A stretch of 64,000 nucleotides of DNA, taken from the NCBI GenBank assembly GCA_002269645.1, contig NIVC01000173.1, forward strand, positions 124,001 to 188,000, in the 5' to 3' direction. This document shows, piece after piece, positions 5,296 to 52,300 of this stretch. The stretch is from Macrostomum lignano. Taxonomy: Eukaryota. A model generated the notes under the pieces. That model ran no database searches. It was given only the letters and a program-made list of their open reading frames with translations, and had not been told where the DNA came from. Both the position numbers and the translations under genes were made by a program. Within the stretch, counting starts at the first letter, position 1, and each line of letters starts with the position of its first letter.

Positions 5296-6130
5296 TCACA
5301 CGGTGGTGACAACAACCAGCAGGTGCGGAGTCTCCGAATTAGGCTGCGGAAACAGATTCGAGTACAGATCGTCAGCGTAGTGCTTCAGCTTGGCCGTGGC
5401 GAACGGGCCGGGCGGGAAGATGTGCACCACGTAAGCTGGTTGCTCCTGGTCGCCGAGATAATTCACGTTCACAATGCCGGCCGCCTGTTTCTCTTGCAGA
5501 TATTTGATGAAGGATTCGCGGAGACTGTGCGTCTGTTTGCGATAATCCTGGGCGTTGATGCCGCAGGCCACAGCTAGCAGCATACAGAACTCGGATTCGT
5601 CAGCCATCTTGCGTTCGACGCCTTCTAGTTGAGTTGGCTCCATGCGCATTCGCTGGACAATTTTCAGCACCCGAGCCTCATCCGGTGCGGCTAATTCCAT
5701 AGCGGATTTGACCAGCGCCTCGCTGCCGAACACAAAGTGCATCTGGACTCCGGCTTCGTCGTTCTTCAACGCCATCTTGCCCTGCCAACGGACCGGATAG
5801 CGACGTAGTAGGCCCTCTAATTGAGACGATTGGGGCGGCGGAGCGGCCTGCGGTTGCGGCTGCTGCTGCTGCGGCGTTGGCGGCGGCTGGTGATGATGCA
5901 GATGGTTCGGCAGCTGGGGCGGCGGTTGCTGCTGCTGCTGCTGGGGCGGCGGCGGCGGCTGCTGCGGCTGTTGCCCTACCGCGCCACCGTTGGGCGGCAA
6001 CAACTGCAGCTGAGGATAGGCGGCAGCCGTGGCGTAGGCCGGATAGAGCAGGTCCTGCCTGTACTGATTGAAGTACTGCATGTACAGCGCTGCCTGTAAT
6101 TGCTGCACCTGCTGATGCTGCTGCTGATGC

Positions 6131-6168
<38 letters not shown>

Positions 6169-6869
6169 CTGCTGCTGCTGCTGCTGTTGCTGTTGCATCA
6201 GCTGATGATTGTAAGCGGCAGCGGCCGCAGCAGCGGTTGGATCAGCGGCGGCACCAACTGGGCCGCCAAGTTGAGAGACCATCGATTGAGGCGGCGGCGG
6301 CGGCGGCTGAGGATGCGGCAGCTGCTGGTGCATTGAAGCGGCAACCTCCGACAGGTTAGACGGAGGCAACGGCACTGGAGGAGGAGGCGGCGGCGGCGGA
6401 GGCGGCGGTTGCAGCAAGATCTCGCCGCCAACAGAAGTAGGCGCGGCCGAAGACACAGCAGCTGGGTGATGATGATGCATTGGCACAGGCATCGAGTGCT
6501 GATGCTTCAAAGCTGTTGTTGGCAGCATGTGAGGCGGCGGCAGGTGCTGCTGCTGCACGGGCCCAGGAGTAGACGAGGACGATTCGTCAATGTGCAAATG
6601 GCGATACTTTTCTCTGTCCATGTATTTGTCTAAATCTACTCGGCCTTCGGTGACGTCTTGAATAATTTCGTCAATATGAAGCAATGCCAAAGCTTCCATT
6701 GGCGGCGGCTGTTTGCGGGCAGGTTTCTGCTTGTGCTGGCTAGCTGATGGAGCGACTGTGCTTGTTGAAGGCGTCGTGGAAGCTGCGGTGACTGTTAAGG
6801 ACGCAGTTGAAGCTGTAACTGCCGCTGAGTTGTTGCTGTTCATGGCCGCGCCAGTCAGACAGATGGTAG

Positions 6870-6904
<35 letters not shown>

Positions 6905-9900
6905 GCTGGGAGCAGCTGAGTCTGGGCAATTGAAGCGGTTGCCGCTTGCAGAACCTGCTGCTGCTGCTGCTGTTGCTGCTGTTGTATCGAAGCGGCGCTG
7001 GACGGTGTCAGAACGTCGTTGAAGGTATTCTCGAGATGCTTCTCCCAGGTCTTATTAGCAGTTGCGGTTGCTGATGGAGTAGCAGCGGTACTCCGGTGCT
7101 GTTGTTGATGCTGATCATGCGCCTGCGCCTGCGCCTGCGTTGTGGTTGTTGGCGGACGAACGGAAATGAGCGAATGCGAGCTCAGCTTGATGGTAGCAGC
7201 CGGGGCGGCGGCGCCATGCTGCTGCTGTTGCTGTTGCTGCTGCAGATGAAGCAAGGCCTCCGAGGTGACCACGGGTGGCTGGGCAATCTTGCCGGCAGTC
7301 ACAAGTGTTGCCGGAGCTGCCGCCGATGATGCAGGAGTAGTCGATGATGTTATCGGCGCTGCGGCAGACGATACAGTTGAAGGCGGCGGCAGTGGAATGA
7401 GCGGCCTCAGATTAATGTGCTGCTGCTGCTGCTGCAGTTCAGCACTCCTAGCCGCAGAGGCAGCCGCAGTTGGTAGCACACTGATAGATGGAAACTGGAA
7501 CTGATGCGACTGCTGCACACTGGCGGCAGAGGAGGAACCAGAGCCGGTCAGAGAGATGTTCGGCTTCTGTATTGACGACGCCGAATGCGGTTGGGCTCGC
7601 TGCTGGCTCAGCTGGGTCAGAGCGTGGGCCGCCGTGGCTTCCAGATCGGACGCCGCGCTGGCAGCGGCGGCTGTTGCGGCAGAAGACAAAGACGACGCGG
7701 AAGAGGATGCCGGCTGCTGTTGCTGCTGCTGTACAGACTGCTGCGGCAGCTTCGGAGATAGAATCCGTTGAGCCGACGGCTTGGCGGCAGCCGAGGCAGC
7801 AGGTTTGGCATCGGTGGCTGCGGCAGCGGCAGCGTCGCTAGCCAAATTCGGCGGTCCCTCATCGTCATCGTCGTCCTCGTCGGTAGACGGTCGGCCGGCC
7901 TGCTGCTCCATCTCGCTGGTGCTGATCCGCTCAATCGGCGGCAGGTAGGGCGCCGGCACGAACGCTTCGTCGTCCTCGTCGTTGTCGTCTTCGACATCGA
8001 CGACGGCAGCTTCGGGCAATAGCTTTCGCTTCTCGGTGACGGAGCACGGGTCGAGCTGGGCCTTGGCCTCGGCAAAGATGTCGGTCAGGCGGGTGACAGA
8101 CCGGCCAGTCTGGGGACTCGACGGCTCGCTAATTGTGTCGGCCAGACTCTCGTGCGTCATCTCTACAGTTGACGGAGTTCGTACGTCTTCCGGCGTAGGC
8201 AGAAAATCGTCTTCGTCGTCGTCTTGATGGCCAACATCCGACTCGCCTGAGGACAGATGGCCGAACACGCTGTCTACCGACATTTTGCCTTTGGCGCCGC
8301 TGCCGGCTGCGAATAGGCGATGCTTCTGCTGTTGTTGTCGGGACTGTCGACGAGCCGATGCTGAGCCTGACGTCGCGGCTTCGCTAGCAGCGGCGGCGGC
8401 GGCCAGCGAAGAGCCCGATGGTACAGCCGATTTTACAGGCGATGGCCGGCCGCTGGCAAAGTGCGCCTGCCGACGGGTGGCCGACGCTGACGTGGCGGAC
8501 GATGACGACGGATGCTGTTGGCGTTCTTTCTTGATAGCGGAGATTGGCTTGGCAGGAGTGGCTAAAGCGGCAACAGGCTTAGGATGCTTGCGCTCGGCGC
8601 CGCTGTCACTGCTGCTGCTGGTGGATCGTTTCTTAATTTTACTGGCTGCAGTCGAAGGCTGCGGTCGCTTCGATCGTTCGCTTCGATCGGAGTTGCTGTC
8701 CGAATCGCTGCCGCTACTGCTGCTGCCGCTATTGCTGCTGCTGTTGCTGGAACAGCTATGGCTGCTGCGAGCACTGGACATGCTCTTCTTGCTACTCCGG
8801 CTGCCAGTGCTGACTGTGCCCGCTGATTTCTTCGGCGTGTGCCGATGCTGATGCTTACGAGCCGGCGTTGAGACAGCAGCCGAGGAGATCGCTGGCGGAG
8901 TTGCAGCCTCCTCCTCATCATCATCATTTTCCATAGCGTCCTCGTTGTCATCGCGGCTAGAATCGCCCTCTTCGTTTGAATCGGAATCCGAATGCTTAGT
9001 CAACGAGCCGCGCATGCTAGGCACCGAGGCCGACGCTTGCAACGATTTCATTCGACGCCGCTTTGAACTCTGCGAACCCGAGCCGCTGCCGCGGTCTCTT
9101 CTGCGCTCCTTCGACGATGCAGAGTTAGTAGCACCGCCGCCGCCGCCGCCAGGTCTTAGTTGGACATCGGTGGCTCGACCAGCTTGTCGGCGTTTGATCT
9201 TGTCGTACATGGACTCGTAGGGCGACATGGCGGCGAATTCGGCTGCCCAATTAATAGTGGAACTGTTGCTATTGCTAACTACAGACGACTGGCGCACAGT
9301 TGCGGCAGGTTTCCAATCTGCCGAGTCCGAATCCGAGGACGACACGATGGAATTCTTCTTACGCTTGCTAGACACGGTCGAAGGCTTCGGCTGCTGCTGC
9401 TGCTGTTGCGGCCTGCTGCTAGCAGAGTCGGTTGCGGCGTCGACAGAGATTGACTTCTCAAATTTAGTCTTCTTTTTAGCGCTGGCGCCCAACGATTCGT
9501 CAACGCTGCTTAGTCTAGGCGTCTTAGTGGCCGGCCGGGGAGTTGACGAAGACGTCGACGCAGCGGCGGAAGCGGCCGCGGCCGCGGCTGCGGCTTTTTC
9601 TGATTCCCGACGCAATCGGCGTCGCTCCTTTTTTTGAGCGCGTGCGGCCTCTTTGGCTGCTCGACGGGACTCTTCAGACGATGAGGACAATGAGGCGCGC
9701 TGCCGCTGCTGTTGCTGAGGCTCACTAGAAGACACCTTCTCAGTCTTGATGGACGCTTGTGACGCGAGCTGCTGTTGTTGCTGCTGTTGTTGTTGCTGCT
9801 GTTTCCGCTGCTCCTTACCGTGGACAGTGTCGCTAGGCTTAGCTATTGCCGCCGTTTTACCAGCAACAGTTGGCTTCTGCTGCCCGCTGTCCTGACGGCT

Positions 9901-12900
9901 TCGCTCAGGCTGCTGCGGATGCTGCTTCTTCTTGACGGTAGTCGGCGCGGTTGTCAACGCTGATGATGACTGGGTGACGCTGGCAGCAGTCTGTTGCTGC
10001 TGCTGCTGATTATCTGGCTTGAACAACACGTCGGCAATTGAGGGCCGACGCTCGGATTTCACTTTCATCTTTTTAGGCTCGCTAGGCTGATCAGCTAGAG
10101 ACGACGAAGACGAATGATGATGATGATGGTGGTGGTGATCAGGAGTCTTGCGCTTGGCTACATTCTGATTTAACGAATAGGCTGTACTTGTAGCAGCGGC
10201 GGCGGCAGACGACGGCGATATCGATAACGGCTTGCTGTTGGCAACAGCTGGCGATGGAGTTGCCGAAGCAATCGAACTCGGCGTTGGCGGAGGATGCAAC
10301 GGCGACTTTAAAGCGCTCGCCGAAGCAGTGCCGGTTGTCGTAGACGACGACATTGTCGGCATTGTAGTTGTCGCTGTTGGCGATTTCAGTATCGAACGAA
10401 CATTAGGCGACGCAATTTGCGGACTCCAACAGCTGACATGCTGTTGCTGCGGCTGTTGAAACGATGGCGGAGCAACATTCGGCGAGGCGATTGGAACGCC
10501 CGAGGAAGAAGGCGTCGAAGGAATGGACGCCGAAGCGACGCTACTAGGCGTTGCCGTAGTTGCTAACGATGCTGTTAAGCCAATGCTGATAGACAGTGGC
10601 GCCTGATGGTGCATCTGCTGCTGCTCCAATCGCCGAGCATCCTGGGCAAACACTGACGATTTAGCGGACGCAGCCAGCATGCTTTTAACAAAATCGCTAG
10701 TGTCCTGAATTGGCGCTGGCGTAACAGCGCCGCCGATTGCCGGCGACGAGGCTGGAGCGCTGCTGACGCCGCCAGCGGACAGGGCGGGAGACGGCACCGT
10801 GGCTGCGGAAGCAGACGAACTGCAGCCGGTTGATAATGGCAGAGCACTTCCAGGAGCCGAGGAACAAACTGTTGCCGAGGAGGTATTAGTAGCGGCTGCG
10901 GCGGAAACGCACAACGGCGGGAGATTGGTCTCGTTACGTTTCCGTATACGGAATTTACTATAGTCGATAGTTGGCGCACCGCTTGCTGCTGTTACAGTTA
11001 CCGTTGCTGTTGCAGACGCTGCTGTTGCTGCTGCTGCTGCTGTTGGAGTTGCAGAGGACAAGGAAGAGGCGGAGGAAGCAAAAACAGATGATGTAGGCGC
11101 GGAGGAAGACACTGTCGCAGCGGCAGACATCGAGGACAAGGAAGTGGACAGCGTAGAGTAAGAAGTCAAACCGCCTGTAGTCGACAGGGATGCCGACGTA
11201 GTGGGCGGCAGCCTTGTCGGCGCTAATCTAGCATCGATGGCACGGATTCTGGCTTCAACTTCGCGATCCTGCTCGGACTCGAACGTGTCTGGGGAGTGAC
11301 GCCCAGATGCCTGCGTGGTAGCCGCAGCGGCGCTAGAAGTCGCTGACGAAGCCGACGGATGGTGATGATGCGAATGATGATGATGCTGAGAATGGTGATG
11401 ATGCTGATGATGCGCTGAATGAGTCGGCGGCCGCAACGATGCACTGGACGACGAGGAAGGCGGTGGCGGCGGCGGAGGTGGTGGAGGCGGGGGCGGCGGT
11501 GGAGGCGGCGGCGGAGGCGCCGAGGTCTGACTGACTGCGCCGGCGCTTGGCGTCACTAAATCTGTTGAGCGACTGCGCGACACCAGATCCTGCAGCAGGC
11601 GCAGCATAACCTGCTTTTGGTCTGTTGCACCGGCCTTGCTGCTGCTAGTAGCAGGCTGCTGTTGCTGTTGAAGCCTCGGATCCCGGGGTGGCGGCTGGGC
11701 ATCGGGTGCAGCAGCGGACGGCGACGAAGATGACGGGCAACCGTTGGCCGTTCGCCTCTGCTGCTCGTCTATTGAAGAAGCCGAAGCGGAAGCCGATGCT
11801 GCTTCTGTTTCCCGACGAATCTCTTTAATAGCGGCATCAACAGAGGCGGATGCGCAGGCCGAGAATGCGGTGGCGGATGCGGCGGTGGCCACCGAATCGG
11901 CGCTGTCCCGCCTGGCGCGTCGACGCTTCTGACTGGCGTCATCAGAGTCTGAGCTGACTGGACTGTGCTGCAGATGCTGCTTTTGATGTTGCAGCGGCGC
12001 TGCCAGCGGTGCAACAGGCTGTTTGCTGCTGCTGCTATTAGAAGAAGCTTCCAATCCGTCGGCAGTTCTGTAGAATGAAAAATTATGAACAAGAATAATA
12101 ACTAATAAAGTGTAGTATCATATTAATAATTTATTTTAAGAAATCTACTAGCAGCACTTCTAGCCACGGCAGAAATTTGTGTAAACAAAAAAGAGATGTT
12201 ATGAGGTGGGTGAGGTAGGTAAGATTCAACCCAACCAACTCAGTCAGCCCATGCATAAGTTACTCGACACTATTGTACTGCAATGAACACAATAGATTTT
12301 TTGTATAGCCTTCCTTCTCTCTTCTCTCCCTCTCACGCACGCGCGCTATAATTAGTTTTGCCAATATAGACCTCAGCATAGTAAATATACAGGCACAGCA
12401 GAGCCAAAACTAAAACCCCACAATGTGCTTTCTCGTCCGTTCTAACCTAGTCTCCGTCAATCATACAGAAGCTTATTTTAAGAGCTCGGCCTTTCACTAA
12501 CCAATGCTAAAAAACCTATGGCGCTAATACCAGTGGCGCTAAAAACAATGCCATTGGCGCTAATACCAGTGGCGCTTAAACCAATGCTAGTGACGCTAAA
12601 ACCAATGCCCAGTGGCGCTAAAACCAATGCTAGTGACGCTAAAACCAATGCCCAGTGACGCTAAAACCAATGCTAGTGGCGCTAAAACCAAAGCCAGTGG
12701 CGCTCAAACGAATGCCCAGTGGCGCTAAAACCAATGCCCAGTGGCGCTAAAACCAATCCCAGATTCCCAGCGGCAAAAAAAATCTACCTAACCCAACAAA
12801 CTAACCTGTGCCTGGACTCTACAGCGTGGCCGCGTCTCTGGCGTCGAGGCGTTCCGGTCGAACCGCTGCCAGTTCTGTGCCGCTTCTTTCTAGACGAGTT

Positions 12901-15900: not shown

Positions 15901-18900
15901 CTCAATTAAATCCAAATTCTAGAAGTACAATTAAGAAGCCTCCATATTAAAGTTCCACAATAAAAAAGCTAGGCAACAAGAGAAGAGAGAAACGAGATTA
16001 GATGCTCGACCAGGAAGAGACAAAACGCATAGACTATGTTTAGATGCCAGAGAAAGAGGAGAGAGAAGACTGAGATTATGAGATCAGATCCAACGGGGAG
16101 AGGATACTGAGAGGGTGAGATCAGATCCTGTACGGGGAGTGAGGAGACTGAGAGGGTGAGATCAGATCCTGTACGGGGAGAGAGGAACTGAGAGGGTGAG
16201 ATCAGATCCTGTACGGGGAGAAATGAGACAGAGAGGGTGAGATTAGATCCTGTACGGGGAGAAATGAGACTGAGAGGGTGAGATCAGATCCTGTACGGGG
16301 AGTGAGGAGACTGAGAGGGTGAGATCAGATCCTGTACGGGGAGAGAGGAACTGAGAGGGTGAGATCAGATCCTGTACGGGGAGAAATGAGACTGAGAGGG
16401 TGAGATCAGATCCTGTACGGGGAGAAAGGAACTGAGAGGGTGAGATCAGATCCTGTACGGGGAGAAATGAGACTGAGAGGGTGAGATCAGATCCTGTACG
16501 GGGAGAGAGGAACTGAGAGGGTGAGATCATATCATGTACGGGGAGAGAGGAACTGAGAGGGTGAGATTAGATCCTGTACGGGGAGTGAGGAGACTGAGAG
16601 GGTGAGATCAGATCCTGTACGGGGAGAAATGAGACTGAGAGGGTGAGATCAGATCCTGTACGGGGAGAAAGGAACTGAGAGGGTGAGATCAGATCCTGTA
16701 CGGGGAGAGAGGAACTGAGAGGGTGAGATTAGATCCTGTACGGGGAGTGAGGAGACTGAGAGGGTGAGATTAGATCCTGTACGGGGAGAGAGGAACTGAG
16801 AGGGTGAGATCAGATCCTGTACGGGGAGAAATGAGACAGAGGGTGAGATCAGATCCTGTACGGGGAGAAGAGACTGGGAAGGTGAGATGAGATCAGATCC
16901 TACGGGGAGAGAGGAACTAAGAGAGTGACATCAGTCTTGTACGGGGAGAGGAGACTGAGATGGTGAGATGCGACACAAAATAGACAGTTGAGACGGTGAC
17001 TCACCAAAACATTGCCAAACCGAGACAGCGCATCGCGCAAATCGGTTTCCCAGACAGTTTTGGGATCCAGATTGCCTACGAACAGAGTTCGCGTAGCCCT
17101 AGGGTGGTACTCGTCTGGAGACTGAGTCAATAGCAGAGTAGACGAAGAAGTAGAATCGTCGGCTTGAGCTGGCGGCTGCTGCTGCTGCTGCTGATGAGGC
17201 GACGCCACATGGGCGGAATCGGCGGCGCGTTTGACGCTTAAATTGGCGCCGCAATAATTCTTGCCAGCGCGCGTAGTTTCCAGAGCGCGCTCGGCGTCGT
17301 CTGCGCGCCTGTACATAACGGTGGCGTACCTGTCCTCCAGGATGCCGCCGTGCAATTGTACGCCTAATATCCTGCCCAGGCGGCGGAACTCGTGATAGAG
17401 GCCGCTCTGCAGGCTGGCGTCTGGGCGATAGGGGGGCGGCGGGTTGGCGAAATATGAAATTTTACTGATCTCCTCTATGAGTTTCTTGGAGTACACCGAG
17501 TGAGTACAGCTGGAGGGGTACTGAAGGACAGGAGGGTGGCACTGAAGGACAGGAGGGTGGCACTGAAGTGCAGGAGGATGGCACTGAAGAACGGGAGGAT
17601 GGCACTGAAGAACGGGAAGATGGCACTGAAGGACAGGAGGATGGCACTGAAGGACAGGAGGATGGCACTGAAGGACAGGAGGATGGCACTGAAGGGCAGG
17701 AGGATGGCACTGAAGAATGGGAGGATGGCACTGAAGAACGGGAGGATGGCACTGAAGAACGGGAAGATGGCACTGAAGGACAGGAGCATACATGCGCAAC
17801 GTCCAAAATTCGGTCGGCCGTGCGACTTAGTTTTAACAAAAATGCGACGTAGTTTTTGGCCAAAAATGCGACTTACATGTAAAAAAACCCTAAAGCAAAA
17901 TTAACGCAACTTTGGGTAAACGGCGGGAGTAACTATGACTGTCTTATCAGGCAAAAATGCCTCGTCAGCTACTTAGTACTACTGCGTGGGTATTTTTTGG
18001 GTGGGCATTTTTGCGACTTCCTTGGTTGGCTGCCAAATCAGTCGGCCGGATCGGCCGACTCGGCCGACTGTTGCGCATGTATGGACAGGAGGATGGCACT
18101 GAAGGGCAGGAGGATGGCACTGAAGAATGGGAGGATGGCACTGAAGAACGGGAGGATGGCACTGAAGAACGGGAAGATGGCACTGAAGGACAGGAGGATG
18201 GCACTGAAGGACAGGAGGATGGCACTGAAGAACGGGAGGATGGCACTGAAGGACAGGAGGATGGCACTGAAGGGCAGGAGGATGGCACTGAAGAACGGGA
18301 GGATGGCACTGAAGAACGGGAGGATGGCACTGAAGAACGGGAGGATGGCACTGAAGGGCAGGAGGATGGCACTGAAGGGCAGGAGGATGGCACTGAAGGG
18401 CAGGAGGATGGCACTGAAGGATGTGCAGCCTCACCTGACAACCTATCCGGGAGGTTGCAAATCTTCAACGTTCTCGATCTGTTGTCAATATCGACAGCGG
18501 TTGACTCGTTAAGTGCCGCTGTCGGGCTGCCGTCATCCCGCCTGCCGCAGGATTTGCTGGCGCTGCAAGCATGTTAATAAAATAATAAGCATTGTACTGA
18601 TAACATGTACATTAGCGACAAAGAAGAAAGTCTACGTTGAAGAAAATTCTAATTGCAAGGGTCTATCGGGGCTTGGGTTATAAGTGTATACATTAATCTT
18701 AACATAAGCATTCGTGTACATTAATACATGCGAAAGAAGAAGGCATCGCATTAATTCCATCACAGTTTGAAACCCCCATCCACCACCCCACATTCCCCTG
18801 GGCCTAGCATAAGCTTTTGCCATGTCCTCGAGAGTTAAGAGAGAGTCCCTGAGAGATATATACTAATGCATATGCATAACTAGATGCATAAAATATATAT

Positions 18901-21900
18901 AACTAAAGCCCTAAAGCTCCCCCCAAGGCCAAGCTAAAGAATCCCCACCTCAACTGTAGCAGCCTCAGCTCAATCCAAGTAGATGGAAAGTGGAAACGCT
19001 CGAGGGGGTGGAGGGATTGAGGTCGGATGAAGAAGAGGGAGAGAGGCTGGGAGCATTTGGGAACGGACTAGCGGAAACTGTGAAGCCAAGATCTACTAAA
19101 GCATTGCTCCCGCTGCCTCGGCCTCTCGCCGGGCCTCACAAGCCGTGAGCGGTGAGCAGAGGGACAGAGGCCCTGGGGAGGCCACGAGAGAAGCCTACGC
19201 AGATGAGGAAAACAGGGAAAGAAGGGGATGGCGATGGAGAGGGTAAAAAATCGATATTCTTTATTCCCCAAACCCCCCCAGTCCTCTTACTTTACCAGGC
19301 CATGAGGAAATAAGGGGAAGAGAGGGAAGGAGCGCGAGATGGATTGGACAAGGCTTAGGTAGGACTAAAGGCAACTATATACTCTGTATTATAGCCTTAC
19401 TATAGCTTTGAGCCCCGGCGGGGTTGGCTAAGGGGTAAGGGATGGAATGAAAGCAAGGCTGATGGGCGGACTAGGGCTTGCCTGAGCACATTATATATAA
19501 TGTAAAAGCTAGGATTGAGAACAGCCCAGAGTTGCTGGCTTGCTGCATATAAACAGGAGCATGGATTAGCACGCAGATTTTGTACGCGCTAGCCCAACTA
19601 GTAGTTCAGTTATATTTATTATACTTACGCTGATCCTTACTTAAGCTGACTTAAGCTTAAGCTGTATTATACTTAAGCTGACTTATTCTCGTATACTACG
19701 GCTACTACGATACGAGATGAAGAAGGAAGGGAAATGAAGGGGCTAGAGAATAAGTCAGGACTAGCTTGGGAAAGGAGGATGGGAAAATAGCGTGGGCTGG
19801 GCTGAGCTGAGCTTGACGAGAGCAGGGGGGACTCCCAATACATGGTACATTCGCCTGTCTTAACCCACCAACTTCCGCAGTTCCCCCCCAAGGAAGCTGC
19901 TCCTGATTGCAGGCCTCGTAGCTGTGCCTTTTTTCTCAGCAGTAGCCAGATCTGTCTCTGTGTCAGTCCCAGATATTCTCTAATTTTTCGTGTCTGTGAA
20001 ACGCAGCTGTTTCTTAAAGCCTCAGCGCCTGCCAAATTATAAATGAATATTGGTATCAGAAAGAGAGGGAAAGCAGGGGAGAAAAGGTCCACTGAATCCA
20101 TTGAGTAAAGGGTCTGGATTTTTAGCATCAATGTATGCATGAGATATCGCTCAATATCATTACATTATTATTAATAAATTATTCCAGGCAAATAGAACAG
20201 GGAAAGAAATGCGGATTAAGCCTAGGGATTAAGGATTATTTAGCCCCTTCTTAAAAGGTAAAAGCCTTTAGCTCGACAATACGAATGATATATAGTAAAA
20301 TAAAGCCAAAGAGAAACTGATCGTGACGGTCGATTTGTATTGAAAGATATTTTTCTTGCTGAATAACACGTTATTTTTTAAAGAGGAAATTCGGAATCAT
20401 TCTCGCATTTAATACTATAACTAAGGCTAATAGATATATCTCTGTAGCAGCAGATGCGCGGCCATACGCGCGCAACCTTGGGAATCACCCGGCCGTTTCT
20501 ATTGGCAACACACACATGTAAGTCGCTATTGGCTGAGAGCAGTCACGTGACTACTATTCTGTCCAATAGCGACATACACGTGTGTGTTGCCAATAGAAAC
20601 GGCCGAGTGAATCCCAAGGTTGCGCCCAAGCATGGATGCGCCGATGTGAAGATTACACTCAAAGGCAAAGGGGCAATGGGGCATTTATTTCTCTTTTTGC
20701 TCCCCCCCCCCGATTTTTCGTCTGTTCTTGACTCGCTTAACATTTAGAATTCGCCTTAGCAAGCAGACAGCTAGACTATAATTGTCGAACAGCTCCCATG
20801 AGCGTAGCTCAGCTGCAGATTTTCTAAATAATCTCTAGACCAAGTCGGGCAATAATCCCTTCCCCTTACCTCAAGAAAAAAAAGAAAATAATTTCTGAAA
20901 CAAAATGCCATCTTATTACATTTAAAATATACACAGTAATTTTTTTTAACAGTACAACAGATATGGGTTAGACTTTAGACCTACAACTGCGCTTTTAGAT
21001 ATGTTCTGTTAGTTACAAAGAATTGCTGTCAATGCTATAGTTAAAAAAACAGATAATAAATATAGGATAAAAATGAAGACAGCTAAGCTAAATAGAGATT
21101 TCTAAGGCGTGTTAACGGCAGCCCAGAATTGGGAGGGAATTGGCTGGGGTAAAAAATGGGGCCACTGGAAATAGAAAGTAGAAAAAAGAGAAAGAAGCTT
21201 TTTTGGGCTATTGGACTGCAGTTGGGTATAGTAGAGCCTACACAAGAGAGGAAAGACAGGGAAGGAAATGCTTTTTTGGCTTTCCAATTCCAACTAAAAA
21301 CCGCGCATAGTCAGTCAGGCACGCACGTTCGCGCCTTACTTTAATTGTACAGTGTACAGTTTTTACACAAGTCCAACAATTCCAAGGCATACGATATGCA
21401 TTAGATTAGGAAAAAATCTTTCTACACGACGCAACGCCAGTTTTAGAGGGGGAAGGGGGGAATTCTGTGTGTGAACGTTCAAGTTCTGTTCAGGGCTGGG
21501 GCTTGCTATTGCCTAGGTTTAGCAACCCCATACCCCAACTCCCTCAGTCCAAGCCCCAGCACCCCTTTTAACCCAAACGCCTGCCTCCCGCCTATATAAT
21601 CAACATAGCTTGGAAGTTTGGGGCGGGCACGGGGGAATGGGGTGGGGCGTCATAGATAAGGCTTAGTATTAGTTATATATATACGTATAGAATATAGGGT
21701 TATACATATAAAAGGATCCAAGGGGCGTGCGCTGTGTGCGCACAAACCGACAAGCACCCACCCCACTCTACACTGGGGGCTACACAACACACTTAATATT
21801 ATAAGCTTAGTAATGACTGATATGTATAATAGGTTCTATACTATAGGCATGCAAAGACCTGGAGTTGGCGGGGGGGGGGGGGAGAGGGGGGGAGTGGAGT

Positions 21901-25041: not shown

Positions 25042-34347
<9,306 letters not shown>

Positions 34348-37541: not shown

Positions 37542-37904
37542 CTCAAAAGCCGCTCGCAGCTCGGCCTGCCTCTCAGCTTTATCTTTATAATGCTTTCGAG
37601 CGGCGATGCAAAACTCTTGGAAGCTGATTACGCCGTCTGAGCCTGCGGTGTCCGAAAAGAACAGGTACAGAGCTAGTGAAGTTTATATACGCTAGTGGAG
37701 GTCTAAATATACCCTCCGAGTTTAAAATTATAAATTTTACGACGTACTAATGTCGATCTCGGCCATGATGTCGCTTAGCTGGGCATCGGTGCAGTCAACT
37801 CCGAATTATCTGAGCACGTTGCCGAACTCGCCAGCCTCGATGGCACCGCTACTGTCCGAGTCGAAGTAGTGAAAACTGCGCCACAGCTCTGCGGAGCAGA
37901 TTGG

Positions 37905-38852
37905 GGCGGGATCGGGGAGGGATCAGGGAAGGATCAGGGAAGGGATTGGGGAGGGATTGGGGAGGGATCAGGGAGGGACCAGCGAGGGATCAGGGAAGGG
38001 ATTGGGGAGGGATTGGGGATGGATCAGAGAGGGACCAGGGAGGGATCAGGGAAGGGATTGGGGAGGGATCAGGGAGGGATTGGGGAGGGATCAGGGAGGG
38101 ACCAGGGAGGGATCAGGGAGGGATCAAGGAGGGATCAGGGAGGGATCAGGGAGGGATTGGGGAGTGGGATCAGGGAGGGATCAGGGAGGGATCAGGGAAG
38201 GGATTGGGGAGGGATCAGGGAGGGACTAGGGAGGGATCAGGGAGGGATTGGGGAGGGATCAGGGAGGGATCAGGGAGGGATCAGGGAGGGATCGGGGAGG
38301 GATCGAGGAGGGATTGGGGAGGGATCAGGGAGGGACCAGGGAGGGATCAGGGAAGGGATTGGGGAGGGATCAGGGAGGGATTGGGGAGGGATCAGGGAGG
38401 GATCGGGGAGGGATTGGGGAGGGATCAGGGAGGGATCAGGTAGGGATCGGGGAGGGATCGAGGAGGGATCAGGGAGGGATCGGGTAGGGATCGGGTAGGG
38501 ATCAGGGAGGGATCAGGGAGGGATCGGGTAGGGATCGGGTAGGGATCAGGGAGGGATCAGGGAGGGATCGGGTAGGGATCGGGGAGGGATCAGGGAGGGA
38601 TCAGGGAGGGATCAGGGAGGGATCAGGGAGGGATCGGGGAGGGATCAGGGAGGGATCAGGGAGGGATCAGGGAGGGATCAGGGAGGGATCAGGGAGGGAT
38701 CAGGGAGGGATCGGGGAGGGATCGGGGAGGGATCAGGGAGGGATCGGGGAGGGATCAGGGAGGGATTGGGGAGGGATCAGGGAGGGATCAGGGAGGGATC
38801 AGGGAGGGATCAGGGGGGATCAGGGAGGGATCAGGGAGGGATCAGGAAGGGA
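37905..38852. repeat. 11-bp minisatellite (gggagggatca)
   Basis: About 85 units filling intron 1 of the EF-hand gene. Confidence 0.92.
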
Positions 38853-39794
38853 TGTCGAATTCCAAAAAAACTGTTAAACTCACGCTTAGCTTGTGTTTCA
38901 TCGAATCCCAAACCCAGAGCCATACGAAGATTCTCTTCTGAGATTGTCTGAAATTGATTAGGGAGTCTTAAATGAATAAAAATTAGATTCCAAAGTAAAA
39001 TAAAAATACAATTGTAAATATTCTCAGGGGGTTGCGGTCAACTCTGGCGCAACGCCGCTGACTCCTGAAAACATACAAGCGCGGCACTACTATGCAGAGC
39101 GTGTACAGTGGCATTCGGACTCTCTCATTGTCAGGCATTGTACACAGCTATCTGTGCCTTGGAGGTTGACCTACTATGCACTGCATGACAATTTATTTAT
39201 CCATCAGCCAATCATTTTTCGTGCGCATGCACACAAATATAATATAAACTCACCATTTTTGCTTAAATGTTCGATGCAATGCCTGCTGTCGAAAATTAGA
39301 ATTTTCATGTATATGCAGCTGAGTCCAAAACAGATTATAGTGGTGGCCTATGAAAAAGTTCTCTTAAATACCTGCAGCCTGATGGTGCAAGTTGACCATT
39401 GAAAAGGTTTTCTATTGTAATCTCTTTTACAATGAAGTAGGAAAAGCATCACAATATATTTCTATAGGCCATTGTTGCCTTCTGGCTTTGTATAGAAGTT
39501 TCCTATAGAAAAGGAGTTACTGATTCATTCTTTTTTAATTGTGAATTGTTACCGTGACTGCGATGAGAAATAGTCCTGTGTCTGGTGAATAGGAGTTTTA
39601 ATTATGCTTCACTTCATATCTTTACTGCGTAGGTCTGTCTCAATTGCCAGCTATTCATAAAATATACAGTAAGATATAGCCATGTTTACAGTGTATTCTG
39701 GCTACTTTAAGTAGCATTTTCGACTTATTATTTTCGACTTTTAACAGATAAAAATGAAAATGAGCTGCCGAAGCCAAAACTCTATAGAAAGCCC

Positions 39795-42985: not shown

Positions 42986-45908
42986 CCCAGTGAAAAAAAT
43001 GATATGGATTCCATGTGGATTTTTCATATGAAATCCATATGTGCATTTGTCTCCGTCCATCCATGTGGAATCAAGATATGGATTCCACATGGAAGATCCA
43101 TATGGAAGTAATTATGTATTTCACATAGAATCCACATTGTCATTGAATAAGCAGCCATTATTACTGGTTGCCATAATAAATTGTTGCATCCTAAATCTCA
43201 AAATAATACCAGATCTCAAAATTTCATACGAACCCCAGATCTCAATACCATATAAAAGAAACTGAAACACAGATAAAACACTAGCTATAGCCAAAAATAT
43301 TTCTGCACAAAAATTCAAAATTCAAAATTCAATATTCAAAAACGATGTAAGGTGTATTTATGTACAGTAGTGAGTCACTGGCACACAAAGAATAAACACA
43401 CTGATGTAAATATTGATATCTTTAGAGTTGCACTGCGCATATGATATAATATATAATTTGAAATTGACATTGTCAATAGCATTAATTAACAATAATATAA
43501 TGCATCAGAATTAGAACAGTCAGAAACATGCTGCTGCCAATTGCCAGAATGCTGCTTCTTCAGGTCAGGTGAGCAACCTTAGAAAAGAAAGGGGTTAAAT
43601 TACAGAATTTTATAACAGATTGATGACAGATTTTGTAATAGATTTTGATAGATTTTGATGACAGAAAAAAATAAGTTTATAACTAAAACTTACCATTGCT
43701 TCACAAAAGGTAGCATTTGAGATATTAAATTCAAATTCCAAGTAGCTTTGCAAGCTTCTTCAAATGCAAGACCAAGGTGACATCCAAGTTTGAGGATGGG
43801 TCATGTAATGTTAGGCTGAAATGAAATAGAAAAATAATTGTTGCCAATTAAGATTGATAAATAATATTGATATAATTCATAAAACTAATTTAATGATGAA
43901 TACTTATAAAATAAAATAAAGTTTATTTTAAAATTAACTAGGCCTAAGTCCTAGGTTTATTTTTTAAGCGCAAAGTGTGCATATGCACCCTAAATTTAAA
44001 AATTGCACCTTGAAAATTGAAATTAAAAAGTTGATGATACAGTTTAGGTGTGATCTCATTACCTATTTTTCTGTTGAAGCCTTTTTTGCACTGCCTTTAT
44101 ATAAGAAAAAAAAGAAACTGCATTTTAAGCCTTAAAATCATAAAACCCTAAAAGTGAGCATAGGGTATGATTTTGCACCTTGTCTCTAGCAAAAAATAAA
44201 ACCCTACCCAAGTCAATCAATAAAATTAAATTAATAAAATTAAAATAATAAGTACAAAAAATTAATATATGTTTCTAAAAATTTAATTTTTTATTTTAAA
44301 ATTGATTTTAGACTATAAAGTATTTAGGCAAAGCAATGCATGTTTTTTTTTATATTTGCGGGCCTATTATGATTAAAAGGGGGGCTGTAGCCAAGCGGTA
44401 GCATAGCTGCTCTGGTGTGCCAGCGACCTAGGCTCGATTCTAAGTGCAGTCACATTAATTTGGGGCTGAATTGGAATCTTGGCTTGGCTCTCTGCTTGTG
44501 CAATTAATGGCCTTGAGAGCCAACCCCCAAGGCACAGTGAAGTATACATGCCTAACAATAAATAAAGTTAGGGCCACTGTACACTCCTATGTAAATGTGC
44601 CTACATACGTATCCGCACGCTTGTGTGCCTGCTCAAGGGAGTTAATGGAATGGGCAGCAATGCCTCTCGCCAGTTGTATGCCTATGTCGCTTAACGTGTG
44701 CCAGGGTGCACACAACCCCCTGCCTCTAATAAAAAAAATAGTATGATTAAACATTAGGCCTAATCTTAAAAGCTATGCCCTATAGCTATTAAATTCTAGA
44801 CTTGGCCTAAATCAGATCAAATTTACAATAATCATTATTTATTTATAATAGCAACCTTAGGGATCTGCTAGGCTAGCTATGCCAAAAACAGGTTGCAAGT
44901 GTAATTGCAAAGAATTATTTATAATGATTAATAATATTGTTTTTAAAAATGCAACAAGTCTAAAAGACGCTAACAGGCTTTTTTGAAGAAAATCATAAAT
45001 GAATAGATTTTTAACAGATTAACTAGATTGACTAGTCACAATTCACAAAGTCAAGCTAGTCTTAACCTTAATTAAAATAGAAGGACCTAAATTGATAGTT
45101 ATAGGCCTAGGCCTAGCCTAAAATAGGCCTAATAAGCATACATAAATAGATAAGACTAATAGGTAGGACTAAGAGGAAATTATGAACTTCTAAAGGACTA
45201 TTTAAGTTTAAAAAATGAGTAGCCAATCTATGGACATGGCCATGGGATTCCTAGAAATTGGATAAGCCTAAATAAATTTATCATGGATGGATTTTACCAA
45301 AAGTATTAGGCCTATCTATGATGAAATACTGATTTATCTAATTTCTAATTCTATGGAGGCCATGGCCTTATAAGTTATTGCCTATAGGCTACGTCTACTA
45401 AAATTTTTAAGGTGCTTAAATAGCCATAAACAAGGCAATTTATCTTTCAAGGCCTTGAACCAAGACATTGACGAATATAAAATAAAATAAATTTAATTTT
45501 AAAAAGCACGAAACGTTTTTTATTGTTCACTTCTATTTTGTCTATTTTAACAAACAGTATCTTATTTTCTGATTATAATTTAGCTTTAAGATATTAATTT
45601 TTACTTAAAAGCATATAAATATAATAATTAATTATAGTAATTTCATAAAAACGTCTTAATGTGGTGTGTCACAGTTTTTTTATCGAAGTGGATTCCATGT
45701 TGAATCAATATACGCTTATTTCTCATGAATTCCTTGTAAAATCCACATCAACATTAGGACAGTAAAAATTAAAAAATAGTGCATAAAAAATACTTTGCAT
45801 ACCATTATGTCATCTTTAAGTCATTAATTTGCAAAAATTAAAGAAACATTTAAATTCCACATGGCCACGTGGAACCCACGTGGAATCCATGAATCATTTT
45901 TCACTGGG
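42986..45908. mobile_element. 2.9-kb non-autonomous DNA transposon with CCCAG termini and 2-bp TSD (EnSpm/CMC-like)
   Basis: TIR cccagtgaaaaaaatgatatggattccatgtgg / ccacgtggaatccatgaatcatttttcactggg, TT duplication, subterminal (ccatgtgg/atggattcc) repeats. Precise excision restores the LINE frame ...RIAK-TYLTYWLKI... Confidence 0.85.
44378..44741 (+). mobile_element. tRNA-derived SINE inserted in the DNA transposon
   Basis: A-box-like tagccaagcgg, B-box-like ggctcgattct, A-rich tail, 10-bp TSD tatgattaaa (44368-44377 and 44742-44751). Confidence 0.78.
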
Positions 45909-47656
45909 TTTTAGCAATTCGTTGGGAGATTGGAGTAAGCTCAAGTTCTGATGATATCACACTGTTGCTAGCAAATTTTGGTAGATTGAGGAGATATTTG
46001 TAGAATTTCAGCTGAATGTTATCAATAGCTTTTGTTTCAGAAATGGTAGCCAGAGGGCCCCAGAGCTCACAGCCGTACGTGATAACGGGGGTGACAAGCG
46101 CGTCGAATAGTCTGCGAATGAGTGTGATGTCCAGGGACGTATTTTTTACCTTGTGGAGTAGGGAAAACATAGCTGAATAACCCTGCTTAGTTTGATGTTC
46201 AATACATTTTTTAAAGCTGTTTTTTGGTTCAAAAATAATTCCCAGGTATTTAAATTCATTTACTTCCTCTATTTCTTGGTTGTCGTAGATTATTTTTGTA
46301 GCAAAACTTTCTGTGTCATTTTTTTGTCTGGTACTGCCCTGCATAAACTTTGTTTTGCTTGCATTAACTTTCAAGTAGTTTTGCTTGCAGTAATTTTCCA
46401 TAGTTGTAAATGTGTCTTGAAGTTCATCTTTGTTTTTAGCTAGAATGGCTTGATCGTCCGCAAAGAGCAGGATGAGTGGGAAAGCAGATCTCGTAAGAGA
46501 GCGCCTAGCGCTAGAGAGTTCAAGATATTCAACAATGTCGTCAATATATAGTTCAAAAAGGATGGTAGAGAGAGGGTTACCTTGAAGAACACCTTTAGAT
46601 ATTGGGATTGGCTGGGTTTCATCATCATCATCATCTTTCTTTAGAATGAAACAGGCATTTTTATGCATGTTCTTGATAAGTTCTGTCATTTGACCTTTAA
46701 TACCTTGGTTATCCGTTTTGTGCCAAAGGGTCGGTTGATTTAAGCTATCGAAGGCTTTTTCATAGTCAACAAAACCGATAAAGAGTTCATTTTTGTTGTA
46801 GATGGACTGGTTTATAATGTTGTAAAGATTAAAACATTGGTCGATTGTGCTGTGATTGGGCTTGAAACCGTATTGGTATTTTGATATAAGATTGTTAGCG
46901 TATGCTAGGTTTTCAAGTCTGGATTTAATAATTTGGCAAAAGAGCTTGCCAAAAATTGGTTGAATGCAGATTCCTCTGTAATTGTTGGGGTCGGCACTGC
47001 TGCCTTTGTTTTTATAAATCGGATGAAGAGTATTTGTAATCCAACTAGTTGGAAAGGTTCCTTGTTTGAGTGCTTCGTTGAAAAGTGAGCATAGGAGGTC
47101 AGTAAGTTCGTTTTCAAGGTATTTGAGTGTTTCTACATATACTTTATCATGCCCAGGTGCTTTGTCGGTTTTGAGCTTTTTAATATGTTTTATAACTTCT
47201 TCTTTGGTGAATGGGGCATTGAAATCCTCTAAATTAGTCAGAATAGGGTTGTCAAGGTGAAGATTGTATGCTAGTCTAATGCTGCTGTCTTGTTCAGTTA
47301 CAAGATTTTGAAAGTGTATGACAAATTTTTCGTCAATTGCTGCATTGTTATTGGGGCGGTTATGTGGTTTCAGTAATTGCCAAAGCTGTCTTGTATCATT
47401 TTGAATATAAGCCTGGTTGATCATGTTTTCTGCACACAGTATTGATTCATGTTTCCAAGAAATCAAGCTTTTTTCATATGTTTTTTTAAGCTGTATTTTG
47501 GATGCGAGGTTGCTACTTGTGGGGAACATCTTATATCTTCTGCTGGCATGCCTGGTGGCATTTCTCAGGTCTTTAAGAAATTGTGGCAATGCTGAACAGA
47601 GTACAACTGGTGGCATTTCTCAGGTCTTTAAGAAATTGTGGCAATGCTGAACAGAG
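45909..47656 (-). mobile_element. Non-LTR retrotransposon (LINE) reverse transcriptase region, 5'-truncated
   Basis: 571-aa stop-free frame with KAPGHD, NYRGI, QYGF, FVDYEKAFD, GVLQGNPLS, LLFADD and FKYLG. No endonuclease domain. A ~50-bp direct duplication lies at the 5' junction. Confidence 0.92.
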
Positions 47657-49391: not shown

Positions 49392-52300
49392 TCACGGCTG
49401 AAACGTGGCATGAATGCCGCTAGGCGTCAGGACGGCTACAGTTTTCGGATCGATCCAATTCAGCCGGCAGCTGCGACCCTGCAGAGACGGACTGATATTG
49501 AACTGTTTGCCAGTTTTGATGTGACTGCTGCCCATGTTGAACAGGGTTGGCGCGCTTAATTGAAAAAATCTGACGTTGTTATCCGTTGCGCTTAGCGAAG
49601 CCACGTGACGACCGTCCGGTGAAAAGGCGCACGCGCTGCAGCTGGCTCCGTGCCGGTGGGCCTGACCAATTAGGCGCGTACAATAATATTTACTTGACAT
49701 TGTGCTACTTAAAGTAGGCGGATTTGAAAAGCGATTCTCTAAATCAAAGGAGCTATTCTAAGAAAATTAAAAAAAGGCGATTCTAAGAAAATTTAAAAAA
49801 AGGCGATTCTAAGAAATACTTGTAGTTGAAAGTGCTTTTCTAGGAAATGTTGCAAAAAGGGTGATTCTAGGAAATGTTGTAAGGGAGCGATTCTAGATAA
49901 TTGATTACACCTGCCCCAACTGGGCCAGATGTGCAACCAACAGCTCAGCCGCAGCTATTGCGCGGCGCATCTGAAGGCTGCGTACGGCTGTTCAGTCCAA
50001 GGACTGGGGAGGTGGTCGCCACACAGCCTCAATTACCCCAGCTAATGCTGGCACCCATTTTACAGCTGGGTGAGCTGAAGCAAAGCAGAGTTAGGTGCCT
50101 TGCTCAAGGACACAAATTGTTCCGAGAGGGTCGGGAATCGAACCCCCGACCTTCAAGTCGTGAGTCAGACGCTCTTACCCTTAGGCTACAACCTCTGCTA
50201 GAAAAAGCGACTAAGATGGCGATTTTTGGAAAAGCTACAAAAAGGGGGTTTCTACGAAATTATGCAAAGGGATAATTCTAGGAAAAGCTACAAGGGAAGC
50301 CGATTCTAGTAAAAAAGAATAATTCAATACAACAATGAAGCATAGAAAAAGTAAAACAATACGAGTTGGCGCACCTGTGTAGTATGCAATTTGCCCGCCC
50401 GAATATCAAAGAACGCCAATTGGCCAATTTTATTGCCAGCAACAATTTTGCCAGACTTCAAATGACAGGACACGGTGCAGAACCGGCTGATAGGCGGGAA
50501 CAGCTCGGCCAGGCCGCGGTCTCTGGTCAGCTGACCTTCCAAGCAGAACAGCAGCAGTTCGATGGTGTCAAACATCAGGTCGTGCACGTCAGCTGCTGCA
50601 CGTTCGCACACTGGGGTTATAAATAATAATTGTTTCTGTTACAAATGCTCGAGGAATAAGTAAACTAAAATTATGATGATTTTGTTAGTTGTATAAATTT
50701 AGGATATTTCAGGTGTCTAAATTTAGGATAATTTGGGTGTCTTGGTGTCTAAATTTAGGATAATTCAGATGTCTTAGGTGTCTAAATTTAGGATAATTTA
50801 TTAGGTGTCTAATTTTGGGATGCTTTAGTAGGTGTCTAAATTTACGATAATATAATTTAGAATAATTTAGGTGTCTAAATTTAGGACAGAAGTGCAACTC
50901 ACCCAACTCCAAGAGTTTCAGTATGGTGCTCCGACCTTTGTACACAGGTGCCTGTTCGGGTGCCTTCGCCCCGGCCAAGTGGGCATTAGTTGCCAGGGTA
51001 TTGTAGCGGAGCAGCTCCCGTCTCATTGTAATGAGAAACAGCTGAGGCCGGGAGGTGGCAATCTGGGTCAGGGCCAGACGGGCCTGCAGGGCCAGGTCAG
51101 TCTCCGAGCTCAGCACACGCCAGCTCAGAGCCACAGTGGCCGAGGCGGCGCTGTCCGTGCTGGCTGTGAGACTGTCTGAGCTGTTCGGCATCAGGCGGTC
51201 CAGCTCGGCCGCCATGTCCAGCAGGAAGCGGAGCACCTTTTAGTGGGGTTTATTAGGGTTGATTGAGGTTGATTGGGTTGAATTAGGTTTTATTGGGGAT
51301 TTATAAGGGTTCACTGGGTTTAATAGTGTTCACTGGGTTCAATAGTGTTCATTGGGGGGTCAATAGGGTTCACTGGGGTTTAATAGGGTTCATTGAGGGG
51401 TCAATAGGGTTCATTGGGGGGTCAATAGGGTTCATTGAGGGGTCAATAAGGTTCACTGGGGTTCAATATGGTTCATTGGGGTTCAATAGGATTCATTGGG
51501 GTTCAATAAGGTTCATTGGAGTTCAATAGGGTTTATTGGGGTTTATTGGGGTTGAATAGGGTTCATTGGGGTTCAATAGGGTTCATTGGGGTTCAATAAG
51601 GTTCATTGGGGTTCAATAGAGTTTATTGGGGTTCAATCATTGGGGTCAATAGGGTTCATTGGGGTTCTATAGGGTTTATTGGGGTTCAATAGGGTTCATT
51701 GGGGTTCAATAGGGTTCAATAGGGTTCAATAGGGTTCTTTGAGGTTCAATAGGGTTCAATAGGGTTCAATAGGGTTCATTGAGGGGTCAATAGGGTTCAT
51801 TGGGAGGTCAATAGGGTTCATTGAGGGGTCAATAAGGTTCACTGGGGTTCAATAGTGTTTTTTGGGGTTCATTGGGGTTCAATAGGGTTCATTGGGGTTC
51901 AATAAGATTCATTGGGGTTTAATAAGGTTCATTGGGGTCAATAGGGTTCATTGGGGTTTAATAGGGTTCATTGGGGTTCAATAGTGTTTTTTGGGGTTCA
52001 TTGGGGTTCAATAGGGTTCATTGGGGTTCAATAAGATTCATTGGGGTTTAATAAGGTTCATTGGGGTCAATAGGGTTCATTGGGGTTTAATAGGGTTCAT
52101 TGGGGTTCAATAGGGTTCATTGGGGTTTAATAGGGTTCATTGAGGGGTCAATAGGGTTCATTGGGGGGTCAATAGGGTTCACTGGGGTTTAATAGGGTTC
52201 ATTGAGGGGTCAATAGGGTTCATTGAGGGGTCAATAAGGTTCACTGGGGTTCAATAGTGTTTTTTGGGGTTCATTGGGGTTCATTGGGGTTCAATAGGGT

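Follow-up and report, generated by a model that had tools for sequence, protein, structure and literature searches.

Within a 64,000-nucleotide stretch of the Macrostomum lignano genome (contig NIVC01000173.1 of GenBank assembly GCA_002269645.1, positions 124,001 to 188,000 of the forward strand; hereafter the window), a gene of the spen family, with SPOC (PF07744) and RRM domains, lies on the minus strand, and one of its putative introns holds a 297-bp element whose centre, judged by its sequence, derives from the helix-69 region of 28S ribosomal RNA (rRNA). A 2252-codon open reading frame (ORF) of the gene, at 5296–12054 on the minus strand, includes a C-terminal SPOC region that is 100% identical to one database protein, the next-best matches being 46–50% identical. 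That identical protein is encoded on contig NIVC01001757.1 of GCA_002269645.1; NIVC00000000 is the Mlig_3_7 assembly of M. lignano (PMC5730564). Over 5.9 kb, NIVC01001757.1 and the window agree at 98.9% identity, but the alignment opens 25 gaps, which disrupt the spen ORF; in one repeat-rich stretch of 1.6 kb, identity is just 89%. The spen product annotated on this contig comprises the last 159 residues only. The contig extends to about window position 10139, where it ends within the large spen exon, short of the element.

The element lies within a predicted spen intron that splits an RRM, since the reading frame obtained by joining the flanking exons, ...RTLKICNLPDRLS-D-ASLQSGLYHEF... (RTLKICNLPDRLS-D-ASLQSGLYHEFRRLGRILGVQ...RYATVMY), is that of an RRM. 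About 600 nt of the 1014-nt intron are minisatellite and 305 nt come from the insertion. The first-pass annotation of this DNA, which was made from the letters alone, had placed the element in an intronic minisatellite of spen, and the SPOC and RRM domains, together with the 21-bp arrays and the predicted splice sites, bear out this placement.

The element is a non-coding insertion bounded by terminal inverted repeats (TIRs) and a target-site duplication (TSD), that is, a DNA-type miniature inverted-repeat transposable element (MITE). The annotation had described it in these terms, as 297 bp long with a perfect 14-bp TIR and a perfect 8-bp TSD; both repeats are indeed exact (14/14 and 8/8), and the surrounding minisatellite provides a further measure of the insertion. 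The register of the 21-nt-spaced minisatellite copies shifts at the insertion by exactly 305 nt, the sum of 297 and 8, and identity at a lag of 21 nt over the junction rises from 0.76 to 0.87 once 305 nt are taken out. If only 297 nt are taken out, an 8-nt phase slip remains in the minisatellite. Since removal of 305 nt restores the register, the 8-bp duplication is a true TSD and not a by-product of the tandem array. Insertion into the 21-bp minisatellite is fairly recent.

Of the generic properties of a MITE, the element has TIRs, a TSD of fixed length, small size and no coding capacity (Table 1); as to multiple homogeneous copies, one copy is present in the window and 5.7 kb of further contig. 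Its six-frame peptides had no match in a set of 5.8 billion proteins, in which M. lignano gene calls are sparse and from whose Logan-derived part the species seems to be absent, and a 37-amino-acid ORF wholly within the element had no exact match in the protein collection. Both arms contain subterminal repeats. Two of the three TGCGAC(T/G)T repeats of the left arm are preceded by CAAAAATGC, and in the right arm an inverted copy of CAAAAATGC is fused to TGCGACTT. As single-stranded DNA, the element folds more stably than its shuffled versions (z = −5.6) because of the TIRs and the subterminal inverted repeats. The 14-nt terminus has four matches in the whole window at up to two mismatches, when 0.34 would be expected by chance.

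Could the locus be an artefact of assembly, with a chimeric join or mis-collapsed reads having put rDNA-like sequence into the minisatellite? The region is repetitive, the genome is hard to assemble (PMC5730564), and the public Mlig_3_7 contig NIVC01001757.1, besides having many indels relative to the window, does not reach the insertion site. However, a chimera would not produce inverted termini that match over all 14 nt, a perfect duplication of 8 bp and an insertion whose length leaves the minisatellite in register once 305 nt are removed, and the same terminus also bounds two other elements in the window. We therefore consider an artefact extremely improbable.

The 28S-derived core was identified in several ways. 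The 27-mer GGGTAAACGGCGGGAGTAACTATGACT, which occurs once in the window, at 17914–17940, is identical to the eukaryotic large-subunit (LSU) rRNA consensus. A profile of 476 columns was built from 69 eukaryotic LSU segments from metagenome contigs, fetched by the 27-mer, and was searched with nhmmer against both strands of the whole window with all filters off. It gave a sole match, on the plus strand at 17914–17977 (51 bits, E = 1.1e-15), over which 53 of 64 positions are identical to the LSU consensus without gaps. The profile match rejects chance similarity to 28S rRNA, and the annotation's reading of this segment, as an exact match of 27 nt within an overall identity of about 53/64, was confirmed. 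The candidate that the core is an rRNA gene or pseudogene was also rejected: in Rfam, 17925–17979 aligns to positions 2255–2310 of the 3401 of LSU_rRNA_eukarya (RF02543) with 11.8 bits, and the gathering score is 50. Since this score is far under the gathering threshold, the core is a fragment and not an rRNA gene. When the whole window was scanned, no Rfam family reached its threshold, and at E ≤ 1 the core was the sole rRNA-like fragment. The 27-mer had no match in viral contigs, and a 31-mer specific to the element had none in metagenome contigs or in prokaryotic genome contigs.

Table 1. Coordinates of the 28S-bearing element, its parts, its surroundings and its relatives (window positions)
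Feature	Position	Strand	Description
MITE (non-autonomous TIR element)	17787–18083		297 bp; GC 47%; longest stop-free stretch 67 codons
Left TIR	17787–17800	+	CATACATGCGCAAC
Right TIR	18070–18083	−	14/14 complementary to left TIR
Left TSD copy	17779–17786		GACAGGAG; 8 bp
Right TSD copy	18084–18091		GACAGGAG; 8/8 identical to left copy
Left subterminal region	17813–17881	+	Contains GTCGGCCG, 3x TGCGAC(T/G)T (17821, 17843, 17867), 2x CAAAAATGC (17837, 17861) and TGCGACTTACATGT
28S (LSU) rRNA-derived core, helix 69–71	17914–17977	+ (sense)	64 nt; after the first 27 nt, 4 point differences from the consensus and one 8-nt block replacement
Right subterminal region	18005–18068		Inverted CAAAAATGC (18005–18013), TGCGACTT (18012–18019), 3x GTCGGCCG (18041–18048, +; 18052–18059, −; 18061–18068, −)
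21-bp minisatellite	17520–18421		Split by the insertion into 17520–17786 and 18083–18421 (two arrays in Tandem Repeats Finder)
Putative spen intron	17421–18434	−	1014 nt; donor CAG/GTGAGG at 18435/18434, acceptor CCCAG/AC at 17421/17420; splice sites inferred from sequence
Family B MITE, copy 1	20463–20636	+	174-bp near-perfect hairpin; terminus CATACGCGCGCAAC; without 28S core
Family B MITE, copy 2	33674–33847	−	Terminus CATACATGCGCAAC, as in the 28S-bearing element; without 28S core

If the core came from rDNA, when did the element acquire it? Compared with the consensus, the core has one point change right after the 27-mer, an 8-nt block in which AGGTAGCC is replaced by TCAGGCAA, and two more point changes, and its homology fades at about 17977. 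These amount to about five mutational events in 64 nt, all outside the 27-mer and all at sites where some 90% of the LSU sequences sampled agree. The 44 nt of TIRs and TSDs show no change. Since the core has undergone about five events and the TIRs and TSDs none in 44 nt, capture of the core probably predates the present insertion, and at least some other core-bearing copies are therefore predicted. That the events spare the 27-mer is not evidence of selection or constraint, since the chance of this is about (37/64)^5 = 0.065.

The opposite order of events must also be considered, in which an ordinary MITE inserted into the minisatellite and a 28S piece entered it in place, as filler at a later break, so that the core was never mobilised and is unique to this locus. 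Insertion of filler DNA at breaks is a known process, a single core-bearing copy was seen, and the relatives described below lack the core. Against this stand the point changes and the block change in the core, which are set against a near-invariant rRNA, when the TIRs, the TSD and the adjacent minisatellite units are undecayed; this contrast suggests a core older than the insertion, a conclusion that would not hold for a core taken from an rDNA pseudogene that had already diverged. On balance, entry after insertion appears improbable.

By the 8-nt block change, the 28S sequence GCCAAATGCC becomes CAAAAATGC, a 9-mer of which the element has three other copies. The window contains seven CAAAAATGC sites, and four of them lie inside these 297 bp, one in the remodelled 28S block. 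We infer that either a subterminal repeat of the element itself served as template for the patch or microhomology aided capture. The replaced block is where R2, Pokey and introns that home in the manner of I-PpoI have their target in 28S, CTCTTAAGG/TAGCC, which lies within the captured segment and is destroyed by the 8-nt block; whereas those elements insert into 28S, here 28S sequence resides in a transposon. Among the metagenomic eukaryotic LSU loci, one runs into unrelated sequence right after CTCTCTTA, owing to an intron or insertion located at this hot spot of 28S. For the block change of the core at this hot spot, nothing is seen beyond coincidence.

We think it probable that the element is a MITE with a passive 28S-derived passenger, acquired by an ancestor through template switching during repair. 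A transposase encoded elsewhere in the genome would recognise the TIRs, each of 14 nt, as well as the repeats TGCGACTT, CAAAAATGC and GTCGGCCG of the subterminal regions, and would move the element by cut-and-paste, excising it and reinserting it with an 8-bp staggered cut in the target. An ancestor of the present copy would have taken up the 28S piece as filler when a double-strand break or an excision gap was repaired with template switching. After capture, the core would have drifted by four point changes, with the 8-nt patch making a further copy of CAAAAATGC, and it would be carried passively. Internally deleted derivatives of P and hAT elements gain foreign DNA through gap repair. That non-autonomous TIR elements can take up chromosomal DNA is established from the Pack-TYPE transposons (PMC6379663, PMC8903248).

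Several points weigh against this explanation. A single core-bearing copy was found in about 70 kb of M. lignano DNA, and no autonomous partner, with either a hAT transposase or a THAP or P transposase, was seen, no genome-wide search for one having been made. The insertion is known from one assembly. The reference for the core was the eukaryotic LSU consensus and not M. lignano 28S rRNA, so that the rDNA of the species, or an rDNA pseudogene that served as source, may itself have some of the differences. The proposed mode of capture is drawn from general knowledge of gap repair in P and hAT elements rather than from evidence at the junctions, and the resemblance of CGCAACTTTGGG, immediately to the left of the core, to a TIR lacks statistical significance. 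Finally, one TSD cannot test a target-site consensus.

It is also conceivable that the core is not passive, and that a multi-copy family has preserved the 27-nt block of helix 69 for a function, which would make this a DNA transposon that co-opted rRNA sequence. The core may then give rise to small RNAs antisense or sense to 28S rRNA, in a flatworm with somatic PIWI-interacting RNAs, may act as a decoy or binding site for machinery that targets rDNA (the R2/I-PpoI region) or may offer, through CAAAAATGC, an extra site for transposase binding. We give such co-option hardly any weight.

Two further elements of the window, which we call family B, bear on whether the 28S piece travels as part of a larger transposon group. 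The two copies are 94% identical to each other, and their 174-nt hairpins fold at z = −15. One end reads CATAC(A/G)(T/C)GCGCAAC and the other CATGCTTGGG(C/A)GCAAC. What family B and the 297-bp element have in common is limited to the 14-nt terminus and a motif, GCCAA.A..GCGACTTACATGTA, about 20 nt long; TGCGACTTACATGT is the left-arm motif shared with family B. In local alignments with the 297-bp element, the family B copies score 28 and 30, compared with maxima of 26 and 22 for shuffled sequences. Since two significant blocks are shared by otherwise unrelated sequences, the termini mark a real, heterogeneous system of non-autonomous mobile elements. This is what would be expected of one transposase serving different non-autonomous derivatives with varied internal content. 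As both family B copies lack the 28S core, the core is not an obligate part of this transposon group. For the TSDs of family B there is a single possible match of 7/8, which requires a 2-nt offset. Family B also gave microRNA-precursor-like Rfam matches that were below threshold (mir-249, 36 bits vs 70), as the elements are hairpins. One further candidate, in which the 297-bp element is a composite of two MITEs flanking rDNA, was tried and rejected: CGCAACTTTGGG, left of the core, resembles the family B terminus, but its score is within the range of shuffled sequences and its orientation is wrong for an inner TIR.

To which superfamily would such a transposase belong? An 8-bp TSD suits hAT elements, yet it also suits the P superfamily and a few rarer superfamilies. 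The termini of hAT elements read YARNG, and P-superfamily elements have 7–8-bp TSDs and termini that read CANRG. The terminus CATAC agrees with YARNG at three of five positions (mismatching with T at position 3 and C at position 5) and with CANRG at four of five. The Ac element has the TSD consensus nTnnnnAn, which GACAGGAG, with A at position 2, fits at position 7 only, a single TSD being a weak test. Judged by these short motifs, the element may belong to hAT or be P-like, the latter being equally possible. For the hAT superfamily, 8-bp TSDs and short TIRs of 5–27 bp have been described, and the consensus for Buster TSDs is nnnTAnnn (PMC3517528). The 8-bp TSD and 14-nt TIR are within the hAT range, whereas GACAGGAG, with AG at positions 4–5, misfits the Buster consensus, again by the weak test of one TSD. 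Because CATAC and GACAGGAG fit the hAT consensuses poorly, and the lengths of the TSD and TIRs also suit a P-like element, we do not file the element under hAT. The annotation's proposal that hAT mobilised the element is not established: the 8-bp TSD, to which it pointed, agrees with hAT, and the terminus and the single target site fit hAT poorly.

The annotation went further, suggesting that the element may represent a TIR family that took up rDNA sequence and is now spreading it, with RNA antisense to 28S arising from intronic copies. In its strongest form, this would be an established hAT MITE family of many copies, with the 28S core as a fixed component and with antisense RNA of biological relevance. 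Several observations are consistent with such a family. The perfect TIRs and TSD imply recent mobility, and the lengths of both are in the hAT ranges (PMC3517528); the core, apparently more ancient than the insertion, has probably undergone one or more transpositions. Since the plus strand has the core in the sense orientation and spen is transcribed from the minus strand, the spen pre-mRNA would hold the antisense of the 28S piece, and to this extent the orientations by themselves uphold the prediction of an intronic copy antisense to 28S rRNA. On the other hand, about 70 kb (the window and 5.7 kb of extra contig) contain the core in one copy only, and the two related-family elements that share the terminus are both without the core. 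The poor fit of CATAC to YARNG, and of GACAGGAG to the Buster and Ac consensuses, also tells against a hAT origin, and the chance of about 0.065 attached to the intact 27-mer provides no evidence of constraint. In addition, intronic antisense RNA would be vastly outnumbered by rRNA, and any biological effect of it is speculation. On the whole, we regard the proposed family as possible but doubtful, and a MITE with a passive passenger as the better account.

How does the element compare with known systems? Internally deleted P elements have an 8-bp TSD, a CAT terminus, subterminal repeats and filler from gap repair, and the TIRs of P elements are 31 bp in Drosophila. Non-autonomous elements of the P superfamily thus resemble the element in the 8-bp TSD, the CAT start and the subterminal repeats, but P TIRs are longer than the 14 nt found here. 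To our knowledge, the rRNA-derived mobile elements on record are retroposons. Mar and Vege, hAT-type MITEs of Drosophila willistoni, are likewise short and non-coding, have TIRs of 11–14 nt and 8-bp TSDs, are often intronic and are mobilised in trans (PMC3517528). The TIR of Mar starts with CAG(G/A)GG, its TSDs fit the Buster consensus and it contains no rRNA segment (PMC3517528), in contrast to the CATAC terminus and the single TSD GACAGGAG described here. Pack-TYPE transposons (Pack-MULE, Pack-CACTA) are found mainly in plants, are usually larger, carry protein-coding cargo and have TSDs of 9–10 bp or 3 bp (PMC6379663, PMC8903248). Like them, the element has a fragment of chromosomal DNA between its TIR arms, in this case 64 nt derived from LSU rDNA, but cargo type, size and superfamily differ.

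Among mobile sequences derived from LSU rRNA, SINE28 has its origin at the 3′ end of 28S; RNA polymerase III transcribes it, and it spreads through reverse transcription (PMC4994717). Our element shares with SINE28 an origin of part of its sequence in LSU rRNA but has TIRs, a TSD of fixed length, no A-tail and a piece from internal helices 69–71. Classification as an rRNA-derived short interspersed element (SINE28, SINE3) was rejected, as the element has TIRs and no A-rich 3′ tail, and its rRNA piece is internal. Members of that class have a head of rRNA origin bearing a pol III promoter, a tail that is LINE-like or A-rich, and TSDs that vary in length. A search of the literature, with Dfam and Repbase outside its coverage, found no TIR element with 28S cargo, no Macrostomum MITEs and no paper containing the TIR sequence.

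The window is rich in other repeats. It contains more than 20 minisatellite arrays, with units of 10–43 nt, many of them in introns; examples are at 2004–2596, 16058–16969, 28000–28888, 29374–30831, 32179–33158, 37904–38853, 51267–53695, 54757–55515, 57530–58271 and 60252–61161. This load agrees with the 15% of the M. lignano genome that consists of simple and tandem repeats (PMC5730564). Between two minisatellites, inside the neighbouring sugar-transporter-like gene, lies an apparently intact mariner-like transposon (30829–32145), with 33-nt TIRs that are 94% complementary and with TA on either side; its transposase ORF (31017–32078) runs through 353 codons without interruption, and the closest protein among 5.8 billion is 65% identical. 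A homology search of the protein set found no M. lignano copy of this transposase, and the ORF had no exact match there; 10 further ORFs of the window also had no exact match in the protein collection. Finally, a 571-codon ORF on the minus strand (45901–47616), in an AT-rich stretch (32% GC), matches the reverse transcriptase family RVT_1 (E = 2e-31) and is probably a non-LTR (long terminal repeat) retrotransposon.

The 297-bp element is, then, a MITE whose passenger has, as it happens, a recognisable source in rDNA. The internal sequence of MITEs can rarely be traced to its source, and here about one fifth of the element was traced to universally conserved 28S rDNA. If this is the single copy, the finding would simply be an anecdote of filler-DNA capture. 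If there are many copies, they would provide a dated example of the dispersal of rDNA fragments by a DNA transposon in a flatworm model, and they would be a source of rRNA-like matches in RNA-seq, rRNA-depletion and small-RNA analyses. Such copies would also offer a handle on an active M. lignano transposase, which may be useful for transgenesis.

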